This document shows positions 51,267-57,517 of a DNA stretch of 64,000 nt, piece after piece; within the stretch, counting starts at the first letter, position 1, and the number at the start of each line of letters is the position of its first letter. This stretch comes from Hemiscyllium ocellatum (lineage: Eukaryota), in assembly GCF_020745735.1 (NCBI RefSeq), contig NC_083435.1:25667231-25731230 (forward strand), read 5' to 3'. Below the pieces are notes generated by a model. The model ran no database searches. It was not told where the DNA came from and saw only the letters and a program-made list of their open reading frames with translations. The position numbers and the translations under genes were made by a program.

Positions 51267-51434
51267 TCAGGGGGTAACTTCGGGCATGACATCTACCGCC
51301 CTCTGGCGGTCCTTCACTGGGATGAATGGCTCGTTCTTCACTTTGGCGTACACCATCGTCTGCTTATCCACCGGGCGCTTCCATCGACTACCCTCATGCA
51401 CATTGATCTCGGCGTATTGAACCCCGTCATCACC
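51267..51434 (-). CDS. Gene B terminal exon with ITIM (GDDGVQYAEINVHEGSRWKRPVDKQTMVYAKVKNEPFIPVKDRQRAVDVMPEVTP*)
   Basis: Phase-0 acceptor aacctcaatag and 56 open codons. Canonical ITIM VQYAEI (51405-51422) plus ITIM-like MVYAKV. AATAAA on the minus strand at 51003-51008. Absent from the ORF track (no upstream ATG). Confidence 0.8.
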   Translation of the reverse strand, partial: GDDGVQYAEINVHEGSRWKRPVDKQTMVYAKVKNEPFIPVKDRQRAVDVMPEVTP

Positions 51435-52004
51435 CTATTGAGGTTAAAGTTTTAGCAATGAGCTGGTGCAAAGCGAGTATAGAGCCGCGAGTCAGGAACA
51501 GTGCAGCGTCTAAAACACAACCTGAGACATGCTGTTCGGAGAGACCTTGTTCAAAAAAAAACACCAATCTCCAGAGAAGGTGAGGACGGCAGTGCTGAAG
51601 ATCAGAGTCGCAGAGTGTGAGGACTCTAAACACCAACCTCCGTCCAGCAAATAGATTTAAAGTGACTGAAGGCGTCAATTACTCGTTAAACGACCAACAA
51701 AACTGAGATCAATGGAATGCAGTCATTGAGAACCGCAGCCACAAAAGAGTCATCACTTTAAAAAACCTCTTGCAAAAAGCAGCAGGGAAAAACAAATAAC
51801 GTTACACTTGAAGCAGAGATTGGTGGAACGCAGTGCGGATATAGAGTAGCAACTGGAGACAATATTTTCTAGATATCCTGAAATAAATAAAAGCGTTTGT
51901 AGTAGCTTCATCACGTCTGAAAAAGAGATTGATCACTCAATAGCTAATAGACATGATTTGGAGACGCCGGTGTTGGACTGGGGTGTACAGCGTTAAATAT
52001 CACA

Positions 52005-52316
52005 CACGGTGGCACAGTGGTTAGCACTGCTGTCTCACAGCGCCTGAGACCCGGGTTCTAATCCTGACTCAGGCGACTGACTGTGTGGAGTTTGCACGTT
52101 CTCCCCGTGTCTGCGTGGGTTTCCTCCGGGTGCTCCGGTTTTCTCCCACAGTCCAAAGATGTGCGGGTCAGGTGAATTGGCCATGCTAAATTGCCCGTAG
52201 AGTTAGGTAAGGGGTAAATGTAGGGGTAGGGATATGGGTGGGTTGCGCTTTGGCGGGTCGGTGTGGACTTGTAGGGCCGAAGGGCCTGTTTCCACACTGT
52301 AAGTAATCTAAAAAAA
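52005..52316 (+). mobile_element. Shark SINE (HE1 type) nested in another short repeat (about 51960-52470)
   Basis: Same consensus. The flanks join into the sequence seen uninterrupted at about 25195-25320. Confidence 0.88.
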
Positions 52317-53409
52317 CACCAGATTGTAGTCCAACAGGTTCATTTGGAAGCAGTAGCTTTCGAGTGCTGCTCCTTCATCCGGTGGTTGTGGAGATTGTAA
52401 ATGCAATTTTATACTCCACAACCACCTGATGAAGGAGCAGCTGTCGGAAAGCTCATGTTTCCAAATAACCTTTCAGCTAATAGACGTGTTAGCTAAAACA
52501 AACTGTTAAATGTAACAGCATACTGCTGAAATGTGATAGCAAAGATAGACGTTTCAACCAGAGTTTATATTGAGCCCAAATAGCGAGAACAAAACATGAA
52601 AGAAGTACAACCAGACACACTTCAAATGAAGACAGGAGTATATTGTCCATAGATTAAAAAAGATCACACGCACACACACCCTGTACACCGAACAAATACT
52701 GAAAGACTGCAGCAGAAATGTGTGCAAACTATCAGCAGGTCAGGCAGCATCTGTGGAGAGAAATTAGACTTAACGTTTTGGCTCCATTCTGAGAGAAATA
52801 CATGCACTTCCAAGGCCACTGATAAAGCAGCTCATGAGATTTGTGCCCGTCGCACATTGGCAGTGTCCAAGGCTTTGAGCCAGGCGACCCATTTCAAAAC
52901 ATATCTAATCCCAGACTTGTGAAATAGCATGTCTGAACAGGTTGGTTAAAACCATCAACCCTGAGTGCATCAACTTGATATGTCCGTTACATCCGCAATT
53001 GCTGACTAATCTATCGATCTCAGTCTCTGCTTAATTCATTGACAAACAATACTGTTTGTGAAGAGCTCTCTCCTCATCTCAAACCTGCATGGCCATTTTT
53101 TTTAACCTTTGAATTACGGATCCTTCCGTTTCCACATTTCCCAGACTGCCCAACGTTGAATTCGATATTTCTGTTCCAGGCCAAATTACCACAGCTCTAC
53201 CTAAAACATGCCTCTGGAAAGCACACCAGCTAAAAAAATCTCACGCACACCCTCAAGAAGACCAATCTACATCCCCAAACCTCGTTTCTTTATCCGGATA
53301 TATTTGAATCAGTCTGTTTAGAGGTGCTGTAACACACCTCTAGATCGGTTGATCTTGAACCCAGACTTTCCAAATCAGATGAATTCTATGATTGCTGTAG
53401 AAGAAAGAA

Positions 53410-53940
53410 CACAGAACACAGAACAATACTACTCAGAACAGGCCCTTCGGCCGTCGATGTTGCGCCGACCTGTAAACTAATCTAGGCCCGTCACCCTGCA
53501 CTATCCTATCATCATCCATGTGTTTATCCAAGGACTGCTTAAATGCCCCTTATGTGGCTGTTAACTACATTGGTAGGCAGGGTATTCCACTCCCTTGCCA
53601 CTCTCTGAGTAAAGAACCTGCCTGTGACAGCTGTCGTAAATCTATCACCCCTCAATTTGCAGCTATGTCTCCTCGTACAAGCAGATGTCATCATCCTAGG
53701 GAAAAGACTTCCACTGTCCACCCTATCTAATGCTCTGATCATATTGTATGTCTCTATTAAATCCCCTCCAATGAGGACAGATCCAAATCCCTCAGCCTTC
53801 CCTCACAAGACCTTCACCCCAGACGAGGCAACATCCAGGCAAATCTCCTCTGCGTCTTTTCCAATGCTTCCACATCCTTCCTGTAATGGGGCCACCAGAA
53901 CTGTACACAATACTCCAAGTGACGCCGCACTAGCGTTTTG
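53410..53940 (-). mobile_element. CR1 LINE 3' fragment in a gene B intron
   Basis: KLRGDRFTT...FFTQRVAREWNTLP; near-match to the 3' end of the 42-44 kb copy. Confidence 0.85.
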
Positions 53941-54943: not shown

Positions 54944-54965
54944 CTTTCGGGTCGCTGAAGAGTGG
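54944..54965 (-). CDS. Gene B cytoplasmic microexon, 22 bp (ATLQRPER if spliced directly after TM)
   Basis: Strong acceptor ccttcctttctccacag and donor AAG|gtaagc. Confidence 0.6.
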
Positions 54966-55983
54966 CTGTGGAGAAAGGAAGGTGATAACAGCATCATTAC
55001 ATTTCTGAGTCCATGACTTAGTTTACTTCTTATGGATATAATGCATTGTCTATGTTAATGCTCCTTGAGCGACAGGCCAGGTGCGAAGGGGACAGCACCG
55101 CTTTCACTCACTAAAAGTCCCAATGCTACTTTCAACCAATGGGTAAGCGGAATCGGGTGGTTTACTGGCGGCATTCCAACTCAGCCTGGCTGACTTCTAA
55201 GGTTAAAACTTTAAAAATGTTAGTGCCTTTCGGATATTGATATGCAAGGTGGACCAGGGCAATACGTACACAATTTGTGTTAGAGCCACGGGAAACAGAG
55301 AGACCTAGTGATTCAGGCGCATGGTTCCTTGAGATTGGCATCCCCGACAGAGAGGGTGGCGAAGAAGGAATTTGGCATGCTTGCCTTCATTGATCAGAGC
55401 CTTGAGTATCCGAGCAGGAATGTCATGTTGTGGTTGTGCAGGACATTGGTGAGGCCTCTGCTTGTATATGAAGCAGTGCATGGCAATTTATCCCGCAAGC
55501 CTGCTTTACAATTAACGTTTAATCAAATACTATTTATGGGCTTTTATCCAATATCCCTAAATACATATGACCAACAAAGATTGCCACGCAGCACAGTGGC
55601 TCGGTGACTTGCGCTGCTGCCTCACGGCGCCAGGGACCCGGGTTTGATTCCCGCCTCGGGCAACTGGCTGTGTGCAGCTTGTATACTCTCCCCGTGTCTC
55701 CGTGGGTTTCCTCCCACAGTTGAATGAAGTGCAGGTTGCAGTGGGTATGCTTTTGACTTTAACACCTGCGGCCCTTAATAGGGACCGGGGCGGGGGGCAT
55801 TAGAGGTTAGTGGAAATAACACCACCTCCAAATTCCCTGCCGATTTGGAAATACGGTGAATCGACCACTCAGTCACAGTCCTGAACTCGCCCTTTTCCAG
55901 CCCCACACTGTGAACGGGAGCACAGGAAGAATATCCAATTTCTCATGGCACAACTAAGTTAAGAACAACAAACATTTCACCCG

Positions 55984-56430
55984 AGTCATAGAGTCATACA
56001 GCACAGAGACAGACCCTTCGGTCCAAGTCGTCCGTGCTGACCAGATATCCCAACCTACTCTAGCCCCATTTGCCAGCACTTGGCCCATATTCCTCTGAAC
56101 CCTTTCTATTCATATACACATCCAGATGCCTTTTAAATGCTGTAATTGCACCAGCCTCCCCCACTTCCTTTGACAGCTCATTCCATACACGTACCACCCT
56201 CTGCATGGAAACGTTGCCCCTTAGGACTCTTTTATATCTTTCCTCTCTCACCCTAAACCTCTAGTTCTGACATGTACACCCCAGGACACTATGGACAATT
56301 TAGCATGGCCAATCCACCCAGGGATAAGACTTTGTCTATTTACCTTATCTATTCCTCTCATGATTTTATAAAGTCACTCCTCAGCCTCTGACACTCCAGG
56401 GAAAACAGCCCCAGCCTATTCAGCCTCTCC
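55984..56430 (-). mobile_element. CR1 LINE 3' fragment in a gene B intron
   Basis: MQRVVRVWNELS...AFKRHLD; agagtcat tail. Confidence 0.82.
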
Positions 56431-57391
56431 CTTTGACCTGACCAATCTCAAGGATGAACAAAAGAAATCATAAAACTAAAACATGCAAATGCGCAAGGCC
56501 AAGGAGATACATTCCTGCTAATGAGTAAATGTAACAAGGGGCTATTTTACATAGGATACTGTTACAATATTGTAAGAAAGGATGCAGAGTTTGGCAAGTT
56601 ACTACAGTTCCCCCTCAGAGCGTTATAACTAGCCGCTATTGTAATTAAACAGGGTCCTCAAAGTAACATGAGCCAGTATGGGAGCTGAACTTGTGCTTTT
56701 AGAAGCTCTTCTTATTGGCAACTGGTTACCCAGCCAACTGAGCTAACCAGCAGGTAGAGGGCCGGTGCAAGATTAACAAAGCCAGCTGCAGAATGGAGAA
56801 CTTACACCAAGCAGGGAGACAGAGCTGTATATCTTTGAACAATACCATTGAGTTGACACCGTGTAATGATCACCAGGCAGGAGTGTTCTTTCCCAGTCGG
56901 GGAACACTTCAGCGGTCCAGGCCATTCGGCCTCGGATCTTCAGGTGACCATCCTCCAAGATAGACTTTGGGGCTAGCAACAATGCCGAGTAGCCAAGCAG
57001 AGGCTGATAACCAAGTTCGGTACAAATGGGGACGGCCTCAACTGGGACCTTGGGTTCGCCCTTTTATTGGAAGGACATTCAAATGTAGTGGAGTTCAGAA
57101 TGAGGGGGCATAAGTTTAAGTTGAGAGAGGAACGAATTAAAAGGAACCATAGGGGCAACTCCTTCACTCAGAGAGTGCAACGTAAGTGGAATAAACTACC
57201 AGATGGAGTATTCAGTGCACGTACATTTGGAAATGTACATAAACAGGAATAATTTAGATAGCTTGTACCAAACGCAGGGAATTGAGACTAGTTCAGTTTG
57301 GTCAGCAAGGATGGATGGATCAAAGGGTCTGTTTTCAATGCTGTATGACTCCATGTCTCTATGACATGTCCAGGTAAATTAATATTGTTAC

Positions 57392-57517
57392 CAGTTTTTC
57401 GGCAGGATTTGACAACAATCATCACGATGATGATCAGGAGAGGCACCATCACCGTTACTGCAAAGACAAATGTTGGGGTAGTTGACTTGGACTCGGTTTT
57501 GCTGCTCCCGTTGTTAC
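57392..57517 (-). CDS. Gene B TM exon (GNNGSSKTESKSTTPTFVFAVTVMVPLLIIIVMIVVKSCRKT), uncharged TM
   Basis: Acceptor tattttctcccag, donor G|gtaaca, 126 bp, phase 1-1. A 21-residue hydrophobic stretch is followed by KSCRK. Confidence 0.85.

Follow-up and report, generated by a model that had tools for sequence, protein, structure and literature searches.

The analysed window, a 64-kb stretch of Hemiscyllium ocellatum contig NC_083435.1, carries on its minus strand what is, with a probability of about 0.8, an intact and expressed shark NCR3 (NKp30) family gene with a predicted inhibitory, two-tyrosine ITIM tail. Seven exons running from 62745 to 51267 are joined with GT-AG at every junction, and translation of this splice model gives an open frame of 777 nt through all seven exons. 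The predicted protein of 258 aa contains, in order, a signal peptide, one VJ-type V domain, a short stalk, an uncharged transmembrane (TM) segment and a cytoplasmic tail. It is an ordinary representative of a family that is already known and not a new kind of receptor. Its novelty had been overstated in the first-pass annotation. Related sharks have an annotated copy of the gene, and NCR3 genes of lungfish and amphibians share its tail. Public annotations already contain NCR3 genes with ITIM tails for several vertebrates outside the mammals, and a study of the shark NCR3 family has appeared (Kinlein et al. 2021, Immunogenetics 73:333). In the open full-text literature on NCR3/NKp30 and ITIM in shark or Xenopus, no paper describing these tails was found. 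What the present analysis contributes is a well-defined model of one shark NCR3 gene, with two micro-exons that are missed by gene finders. The two tail tyrosines that are invariant from shark to amphibian offer a concrete target for testing if early NKp30 receptors had an inhibitory function.

Gene structure and orthologs

Exon 1 (62703..62745; all model exons are on the minus strand) contains the start codon at 62745-62743 and the signal peptide, and ends in phase 1 at a GT donor. The leader that it encodes is identical in the Chiloscyllium plagiosum RefSeq protein. Exon 2 (60064..60405) encodes a single-exon VJ-type V-set Ig domain that carries EVSNSTPEFRDRV, as first proposed, and ends in YGAGTTVIVT, its J-like segment with the GxGT of the G strand. 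The acceptor of exon 2 is a NAGNAG (cagCAG); in C. plagiosum, a one-residue difference between isoforms X1 and X2 falls at this acceptor. Exon 3 (57392..57517) encodes a short Ser/Thr-rich stalk, an uncharged TM helix (residues 145-164) and the membrane-proximal sequence KSCRKT. Exon 4 (54944..54965) is a micro-exon of 22 nt encoding ATLQRPE and a split codon, exon 5 (54807..54841) is a micro-exon of 35 nt encoding SDPPYAEIDEG, and exon 6 (54073..54113) is a micro-exon of 41 nt (TNYVRSECRRTNR) that restores phase 0. In exon 7, whose coding part is 51267..51434, the AG acceptor lies at 51434 and the stop codon is TGA at 51269-51267. Downstream is a presumed 3' UTR (51003..51266, minus strand) with a candidate AATAAA signal at 51008-51003.

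The chain from the V exon to the last exon had been recognised in the first-pass annotation, but the micro-exons at 54965-54944 (22 nt) and 54113-54073 (41 nt) had been missed. Both are needed to enter exon 7 in the ITIM frame. When exon 6 was omitted, exon 7 was entered out of frame and a TGA followed immediately. Joining exon 5 directly to exon 7 gave G/GG TGA, joining the TM exon directly to exon 7 gave the same TGA stop, and joining exon 4 directly to exon 7 gave another frame without the motifs. Joining the TM exon directly to exon 5, as in the Chiloscyllium punctatum GenBank model chiPu_0017018, led to a TAG stop in the window; that model omits both micro-exons and takes a third exon out of frame. 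These four junctions were rejected.

The C. punctatum locus retains each of the seven exons together with its splice sites, exon 4 with its AG and GT sites among them. Exon 4 is also represented in RefSeq proteins from Heterodontus, Scyliorhinus and C. plagiosum, the last of which has exon 6 as well. The C. plagiosum proteins X1 (XP_043533716.1) and X2 (XP_043533718.1), both annotated as 'uncharacterized protein', have 258 aa, are 94% identical to the model and consist of the same seven coding segments. The alignment with X1 contains 242/258 identical residues and no gaps. VQYAEI and MVYAKV are identical and the TM segment is likewise uncharged, while the 16 substitutions leave PLYAEM in exon 5 where H. 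ocellatum has PPYAEI. On this comparison the gene is the ortholog of C. plagiosum LOC122541165. Two things confirm the predicted V-to-tail exon chain, this RefSeq model of the ortholog and the conserved exons of a second species, and the exon junctions in H. ocellatum rest on the orthologous Gnomon model together with that conservation. The dN/dS ratio against C. punctatum was 0.40 overall, 0.31 for the V domain and 0.55 for the tail, the last value being derived from 15 substitutions. The C. punctatum copy has a stop 13 codons upstream, yet downstream of both tyrosines.

Outside the model lies a stalk-exon relic of 60 nt (59912..59971, minus strand), a homolog of the exon that the nurse shark NCR3 protein QTT61898 keeps as its 20-aa stalk insert. 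The copy of this ORF in C. punctatum contains an in-frame stop, and the C. plagiosum RefSeq models skip it. A functional stalk exon at 59971-59912 was rejected on the basis of that stop and the lack of an in-frame GT donor in H. ocellatum.

Transmembrane segment, tail motifs and proposed signalling

As the first-pass annotation had stated, the TM segment has no charged residue (zero in residues 145-164), and the positively charged TM residue of mammalian activating NKp30 is absent. The mammalian NKp30 sequences compared all combine an Arg in the TM segment with a short tail without a signalling motif, in agreement with the earlier statement that mammalian NKp30 has no ITIM, whereas the shark gene combines an uncharged TM segment with a two-tyrosine ITIM tail. 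Charged-TM members of NCR3 also occur in sharks, such as nurse shark QTT61904, which has a Lys in the TM segment and is of the activating type. As applied to non-mammals, a charged TM segment marks the activating subtype and not the NCR3 family.

The cytoplasmic tail consists of 94 residues. Exon 7 encodes VQYAEI (51422-51405), a canonical ITIM of the form [S/I/V/L]xYxx[I/V/L] with tyrosine Y210, and MVYAKV (51356-51339), with tyrosine Y232, which is ITIM-like and non-canonical, having Met at -2. Both motifs had been reported as about 20 residues apart, and the Y210-Y232 spacing is 22 residues. The PPYAEI of exon 5 is present at 54834-54817 as described earlier, but it is not an ITIM because it has Pro at -2, and it is not conserved. 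VQYAEI is the one canonical ITIM among the three tyrosine motifs in this species, and no VQY-type tail exon besides exon 7 was found elsewhere in the window.

The exon 7 tyrosines are the only invariant tail columns in an alignment of Chiloscyllium, Heterodontus, Scyliorhinus, lungfish, caecilian and newt, with a spacing of 22 residues in the compared tails and 23 in newt. Conservation of the tyrosines in related sharks had been set as a test of the tail, and both are kept in Chiloscyllium, Heterodontus and Scyliorhinus. The motif aligned to MVYAKV is canonical in Heterodontus, Scyliorhinus and lungfish (VLYATV, VVYASV), and in other sharks it reads canonical VxYxxV. The lungfish (XP_043938374.1), caecilian (XP_029439644.1) and newt (XP_078502137.1) proteins also have a single V domain and an uncharged TM segment, and their tail tyrosines, 22-23 residues apart, align with Y210 and Y232. 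Their V domains are only about 34-35% identical to that of the shark, and the micro-exon region is not comparable. In pairwise BLASTP the shark tail matched the lungfish NCR3-like tail with an E value of 6e-5. The tail-only homolog search matched just two Chiloscyllium proteins, owing to its word index, and the deeper relatives came from a V-domain search of representatives. The chance of one ITIM in a 55-aa peptide is about 1/10, as estimated from residue frequencies; chance does not account for two tyrosines that stay unchanged, at a fixed distance, throughout several classes of vertebrates.

Mammalian NKp30 pairs with CD3-zeta or FcR-gamma through its TM Arg. PECAM-1, PD-1, KIR2DL and SIRP-alpha have an uncharged TM segment and paired tyrosine motifs about 20-30 residues apart, and the spacing of 22 is within the known range of SHP-binding motif pairs (23 in PECAM-1 and 25 in PD-1). 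Signalling by mammalian NKp30 proceeds via ITAM adaptors (PMC6514059). The shark protein would be a type I membrane protein with the V domain as its ligand-binding part, and pairing with ITAM adaptors (CD3-zeta, FcR-gamma) would not be expected because its TM segment has no charged residue. Ligand binding would lead to phosphorylation of Y210 and Y232 by Src-family kinases. With both tyrosines phosphorylated, the tail would bind SHP-1 or SHP-2 through their tandem SH2 domains, and the activation of the cell, NK-like or of another lymphoid type, would be dampened. By analogy, the shark gene probably works like the classical ITIM-pair receptors, whose ectodomains are unrelated or distantly related to it.

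It is unlikely, though conceivable, that the tail of this real gene is not a simple inhibitory module and acts mainly through endocytosis or sorting signals or as an ITIM plus ITSM-like switch, with the Yxx(I/M) of exon 5 recruiting other SH2 proteins and the net output being context-dependent or activating. YxxI and YxxV fit AP-2 sorting signals as well, but a spacing fixed at 22 residues suggests that a tandem-SH2 protein binds in bidentate fashion. In this species the second motif is non-canonical, and the first motif of the caecilian, which has no canonical ITIM, is TxYxxL; against this, most compared species have a canonical ITIM at one or both positions, and Heterodontus, lungfish and newt have it at both. 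Exon 5 shows a YxxM pattern in C. plagiosum (PLYAEM) and nurse shark (YADM), but its tyrosine is kept only within orectolobiform sharks, being replaced by Asn in Heterodontus and by Cys in Scyliorhinus. The ITIM of NKp44-1 is phosphorylated without recruitment of SHP-1, SHP-2 or SHIP (PMC6514059); this ITIM isoform keeps a charged TM segment, unlike the shark gene.

An inhibitory tail would place the shark receptor opposite to mammalian NKp30, and the first-pass annotation had described its polarity as reversed relative to mammals. The direction is better inverted: the two-tyrosine tail is common to sharks, lungfish and amphibians, and mammals look derived. That the 22-spaced tail is an ancestral NKp30 module, dating from the ancestor of cartilaginous and bony vertebrates, and that the shark NCR3 literature does not yet say so, we regard as rather unlikely. 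If the tail were ancestral, NKp30 would have begun as an inhibitory or switchable receptor, the tail would have been retained in sharks, lungfish and amphibians, and a purely activating, adaptor-dependent form would have arisen only on the mammal line.

V domain and family placement

The V domain matches Pfam V-set with an E value of 8e-13, and its top match in PDB is human NKp30 (E 2.9e-15). The best four PDB matches are human NCR3 (E 3e-15 to 6e-15), followed by an antibody at 2e-8. The other V exons in the window, on the plus strand at 20414-20737 and 23592-23918, matched NKp30 at about 1e-6 and 5e-6, respectively, below many antibodies, which agrees with the earlier view that, within the window, exon 2 has the V domain closest to NKp30. 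Human and mammalian NKp30 (PDB 3NOI, 3PV6) likewise have a single VJ-type V domain in one exon, and the TPEFRxR motif is common to both. MHC linkage and B7H6 as a ligand are further traits of NKp30/NCR3; within the 64-kb window only NCR3-like V exons were found, and no flanking MHC marker.

In a tree of V domains based on 111 columns, the gene falls in a shark clade with 100/99 support that includes nurse shark NCR3 QTT61898. The QTT61898 V domain is 76% identical, its leader is identical and its TM segment is uncharged. The nurse shark NCR3 family described by Kinlein et al. in 2021 is said to include inhibitory-type members. An NKp30/NCR3-family receptor with an uncharged TM segment and an ITIM-bearing tail, as proposed at the outset, is supported by the PDB ranking, this clade, the exon chain and the motifs.

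It is very unlikely that the gene encodes another VJ-type IgSF receptor, SIRP-like, with a V domain that merely resembles NKp30. Antibodies aside, SIRP V domains come next after NKp30 in the PDB search (E about 6e-8), but NKp30 is ahead of SIRP by seven orders of magnitude in E value. Isoforms X1 and X2 of the Heterodontus ortholog bear the RefSeq name 'tyrosine-protein phosphatase non-receptor type substrate 1-like', whereas NCR3 or NCR3-like is the name given to the proteins of lungfish and amphibians that share the tail. In the V tree the shark clade and tetrapod NKp30 meet in a polytomy, but one member of the clade, from nurse shark, was deposited as NCR3. Unlike SIRP, the gene has one V domain and no C1 domains, and its V exon is spliced straight to the stalk/TM exon. 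The SIRP-like reading was rejected on the lack of the two C1-set domains and on the PDB ranking.

Transcription and isoforms

An RNA run from the same organism contained 0.70 of the words of 50990-51434, the stretch comprising exon 7 and the 3' UTR, and only 0.05 of the words of the whole 6.3-kb stretch, as spliced RNA would give. The last exon is transcribed. It is very unlikely that in H. ocellatum the V/TM unit is seldom or never spliced to the ITIM exon, with a short-tailed main product or pseudogene drift. In favour of that reading, QTT61898 stops after exon 5, skipping of the 41-nt exon leads to an immediate stop and the stalk exon has already decayed. Against it, no stop interrupts the frame across the seven exons, every splice site is canonical, the annotations of Heterodontus, Scyliorhinus and C. 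plagiosum give the same exon chain, the last exon is in the RNA, and dN/dS is below 1. An intact gene with the ITIM tail is the preferred reading, and ITIM-less isoforms may be produced from it in H. ocellatum too, because the cDNA-derived QTT61898 ends right after exon 5, without the ITIM exon, and Heterodontus isoform X3 uses a different tail.

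Exon structure and expression of the NCR3-family gene

Read from 64000 down to 51000, the minus strand gave a chain of seven exons with AG acceptors and GT donors, and the joined exons formed an open frame of 777 nt, 258 codons. Exon 1 (62745-62703) carried the start codon and the signal peptide, exon 2 (60405-60064) was a single V exon ending in the J-like motif YGAGTTVIVT, and exon 3 (57517-57392) encoded a short stalk, the TM helix and KSCRKT. These were followed by three micro-exons of 22, 35 and 41 nt, exon 4 (54965-54944), exon 5 (54841-54807, SDPPYAEIDEG) and exon 6 (54113-54073), respectively, and by the last coding exon, exon 7 (51434-51267). 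The first-pass annotation had joined the last exon to the V/TM unit through a single micro-exon; three were needed to keep the frame. Inclusion of the 22-nt and 41-nt exons was the sole path by which the last exon was entered in phase 0, the frame with the tyrosine motifs. Splicing of exon 5 straight to the last exon was rejected because the junction reads G/GG TGA, a stop, and splicing of the TM exon straight to exon 5 was rejected because of an in-frame TAG stop.

Three indirect lines back this chain, namely a RefSeq ortholog, the exons of a second species and RNA from the last exon. The V domain was searched against 1.8 billion representative proteins, and follow-up searches were then run; these recovered LOC122541165 of Chiloscyllium plagiosum, whose isoform X1 has 258 residues, contains the full tail and the peptides encoded by the three micro-exons, and was identical to the model at 242 of 258 positions without a gap. 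Isoform X2 differed by one residue, at a NAGNAG acceptor that is seen in the window too. At the C. punctatum genomic locus L001 (BEZZ01001197.1), all seven exons were kept along with their splice sites, and the stop lay 13 codons earlier, downstream of both tyrosines. The GenBank model chiPu_0017018, at 10001-21056 of this locus, is mis-spliced and has a wrong N-terminus: it skips exons 4 (22 nt) and 6 (41 nt) and reads the 35-nt exon 5 in another frame, which accounts for its odd middle segment. When the exon structure of the window was applied to the same interval, the resulting protein and the C. plagiosum RefSeq model were colinear. In RefSeq, the Heterodontus francisci and Scyliorhinus canicula proteins showed the same segment order, with the TM followed by three short segments and the tail.

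RNA run X3, which derives from the organism of the window itself, contained 0.70 of the words sampled from 50990-51434 but only 0.05 of those from the whole 6.3-kb stretch, as a spliced transcript would give. Against C. punctatum, dS was 0.08 and the overall dN/dS 0.40, with 0.31 for the V domain and 0.55 for the tail, on few substitutions; these values fit a functional, moderately constrained gene.

Between the V and TM exons (59971-59912, minus strand) lay the 60-nt remnant of a stalk exon, homologous with the 20-aa insert in the stalk of the nurse shark protein QTT61898, deposited as NCR3. The relic was open in frame in the window and had no in-frame GT donor, and the C. punctatum copy contained an in-frame stop. 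The introns also held two interspersed-repeat copies (52060-52300 and 55600-55730, minus strand) sharing the core GAAACCCACG.AGACACGGGGAGA.... Microsatellites (runs of GATA, GACA and GGCA, and one long run rich in C) were found on the minus strand within intron 1 and in the region upstream (62020-62140 and 63330-63350), and a CA run was seen at about 63760-63775 on the same strand.

Family placement of the V domain

The V domain of the gene was assigned to the V-set domains of Pfam and contained the motif EVSNSTPEFRDRV noted earlier. Among all solved structures, its best four matches were human NKp30, with E values of 3e-15 to 6e-15, while the next family reached 2e-8 and SIRP 6e-8. Two other V exons of VJ type, at 20414-20737 and 23592-23918 on the plus strand, matched human NKp30 at only about 1e-6 and 5e-6, respectively, so this V domain was correctly named the most NKp30-like in the window. 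A maximum-likelihood tree built from 29 V domains placed the gene within a shark clade (support 100/99) with Chiloscyllium, Scyliorhinus and Heterodontus proteins and QTT61898; this clade and tetrapod NKp30 met in a polytomy.

Members of the shark NCR3 family are reportedly of different signalling types. A published account of the family exists (Kinlein et al. 2021, as cited in PMC10450919), as do GenBank entries, and the C. plagiosum ortholog is already present in RefSeq, labelled as an uncharacterised protein. The first-pass reading of the gene is right; the gene extends a known family by one member and is of modest interest.

Tyrosine motifs and predicted signalling of the tail

All motifs that had been proposed from the sequence were located. 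VQYAEI, at 51422-51405, is a canonical ITIM, and MVYAKV, described as ITIM-like, lies at 51356-51339 with Met at -2. PPYAEI was found in exon 5 at 54834-54817 and is not an ITIM, since it has Pro at -2. The TM helix (residues 145-164) contained zero charged residues, as claimed, and the tyrosine spacing, estimated at about 20 residues, was 22 (Y210 to Y232), both tyrosines being encoded by the last exon.

Last-exon peptides were aligned from the window, two Chiloscyllium species, Heterodontus, Scyliorhinus, a second Heterodontus paralog, lungfish, caecilian and newt. The two tyrosines were the only invariant columns; a lack of their conservation in related sharks had been named beforehand as a refuting outcome. 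The spacing was 22 in the window, both Chiloscyllium species, Heterodontus, Scyliorhinus, lungfish and caecilian, and 23 in newt. In Heterodontus, Scyliorhinus and lungfish the second motif took a canonical form (VLYATV, VVYASV), but in the Chiloscyllium-like lineage it had Met at -2. The same two-tyrosine tail occurs in annotated NCR3 or NCR3-like proteins of lungfish, caecilian and newt, and in pairwise comparison the tails of the window and lungfish matched with an E value of 6e-5. Neither the exon 5 tyrosine nor that of exon 6 was conserved; Heterodontus and Scyliorhinus have Asn or Cys at these positions.

The 22-residue spacing of the shark gene falls in the range seen for SHP-binding pairs, examples being PECAM-1 (23) and PD-1 (25). 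The exon structure, the family assignment and the conserved motifs are observed, and a probable mode of action is proposed: once the V domain binds its ligand, Src-family kinases would phosphorylate Y210 and Y232, upon which SHP-1 or SHP-2 could dock bidentately via their tandem SH2 domains and dampen cell activation. The recovered mammalian NKp30 sequences had Arg in the TM and, as had been stated, lacked an ITIM, in agreement with a review in which NCR tails, NKp44 excepted, are described as lacking inherent signalling capacity (PMC6514059). Alternative tails are likely for this gene, judging from its relatives: QTT61898 has nothing beyond exon 5, and a different tail exon is used in isoform X3 of Heterodontus.

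Other V-domain sequences in the window

The two plus-strand V exons were 83% identical to one another and belonged to a second shark subfamily (support 100/100 in the 29-domain tree), whose members include Carcharodon, Scyliorhinus and Heterodontus proteins with DNVQYxxLN motifs in their tails. No VQY-type tail exon for these two exons was found within the window. A weak V-domain-like fragment (FYCKV...GNG; tblastn E about 2) at 40547-40698 on the minus strand may be a decayed V exon; its surroundings were GC-rich, with strong negative GC skew at 38-40 kb. Strong positive GC skew of 0.35-0.42 was observed at 14000-18000 and 42000-44000.
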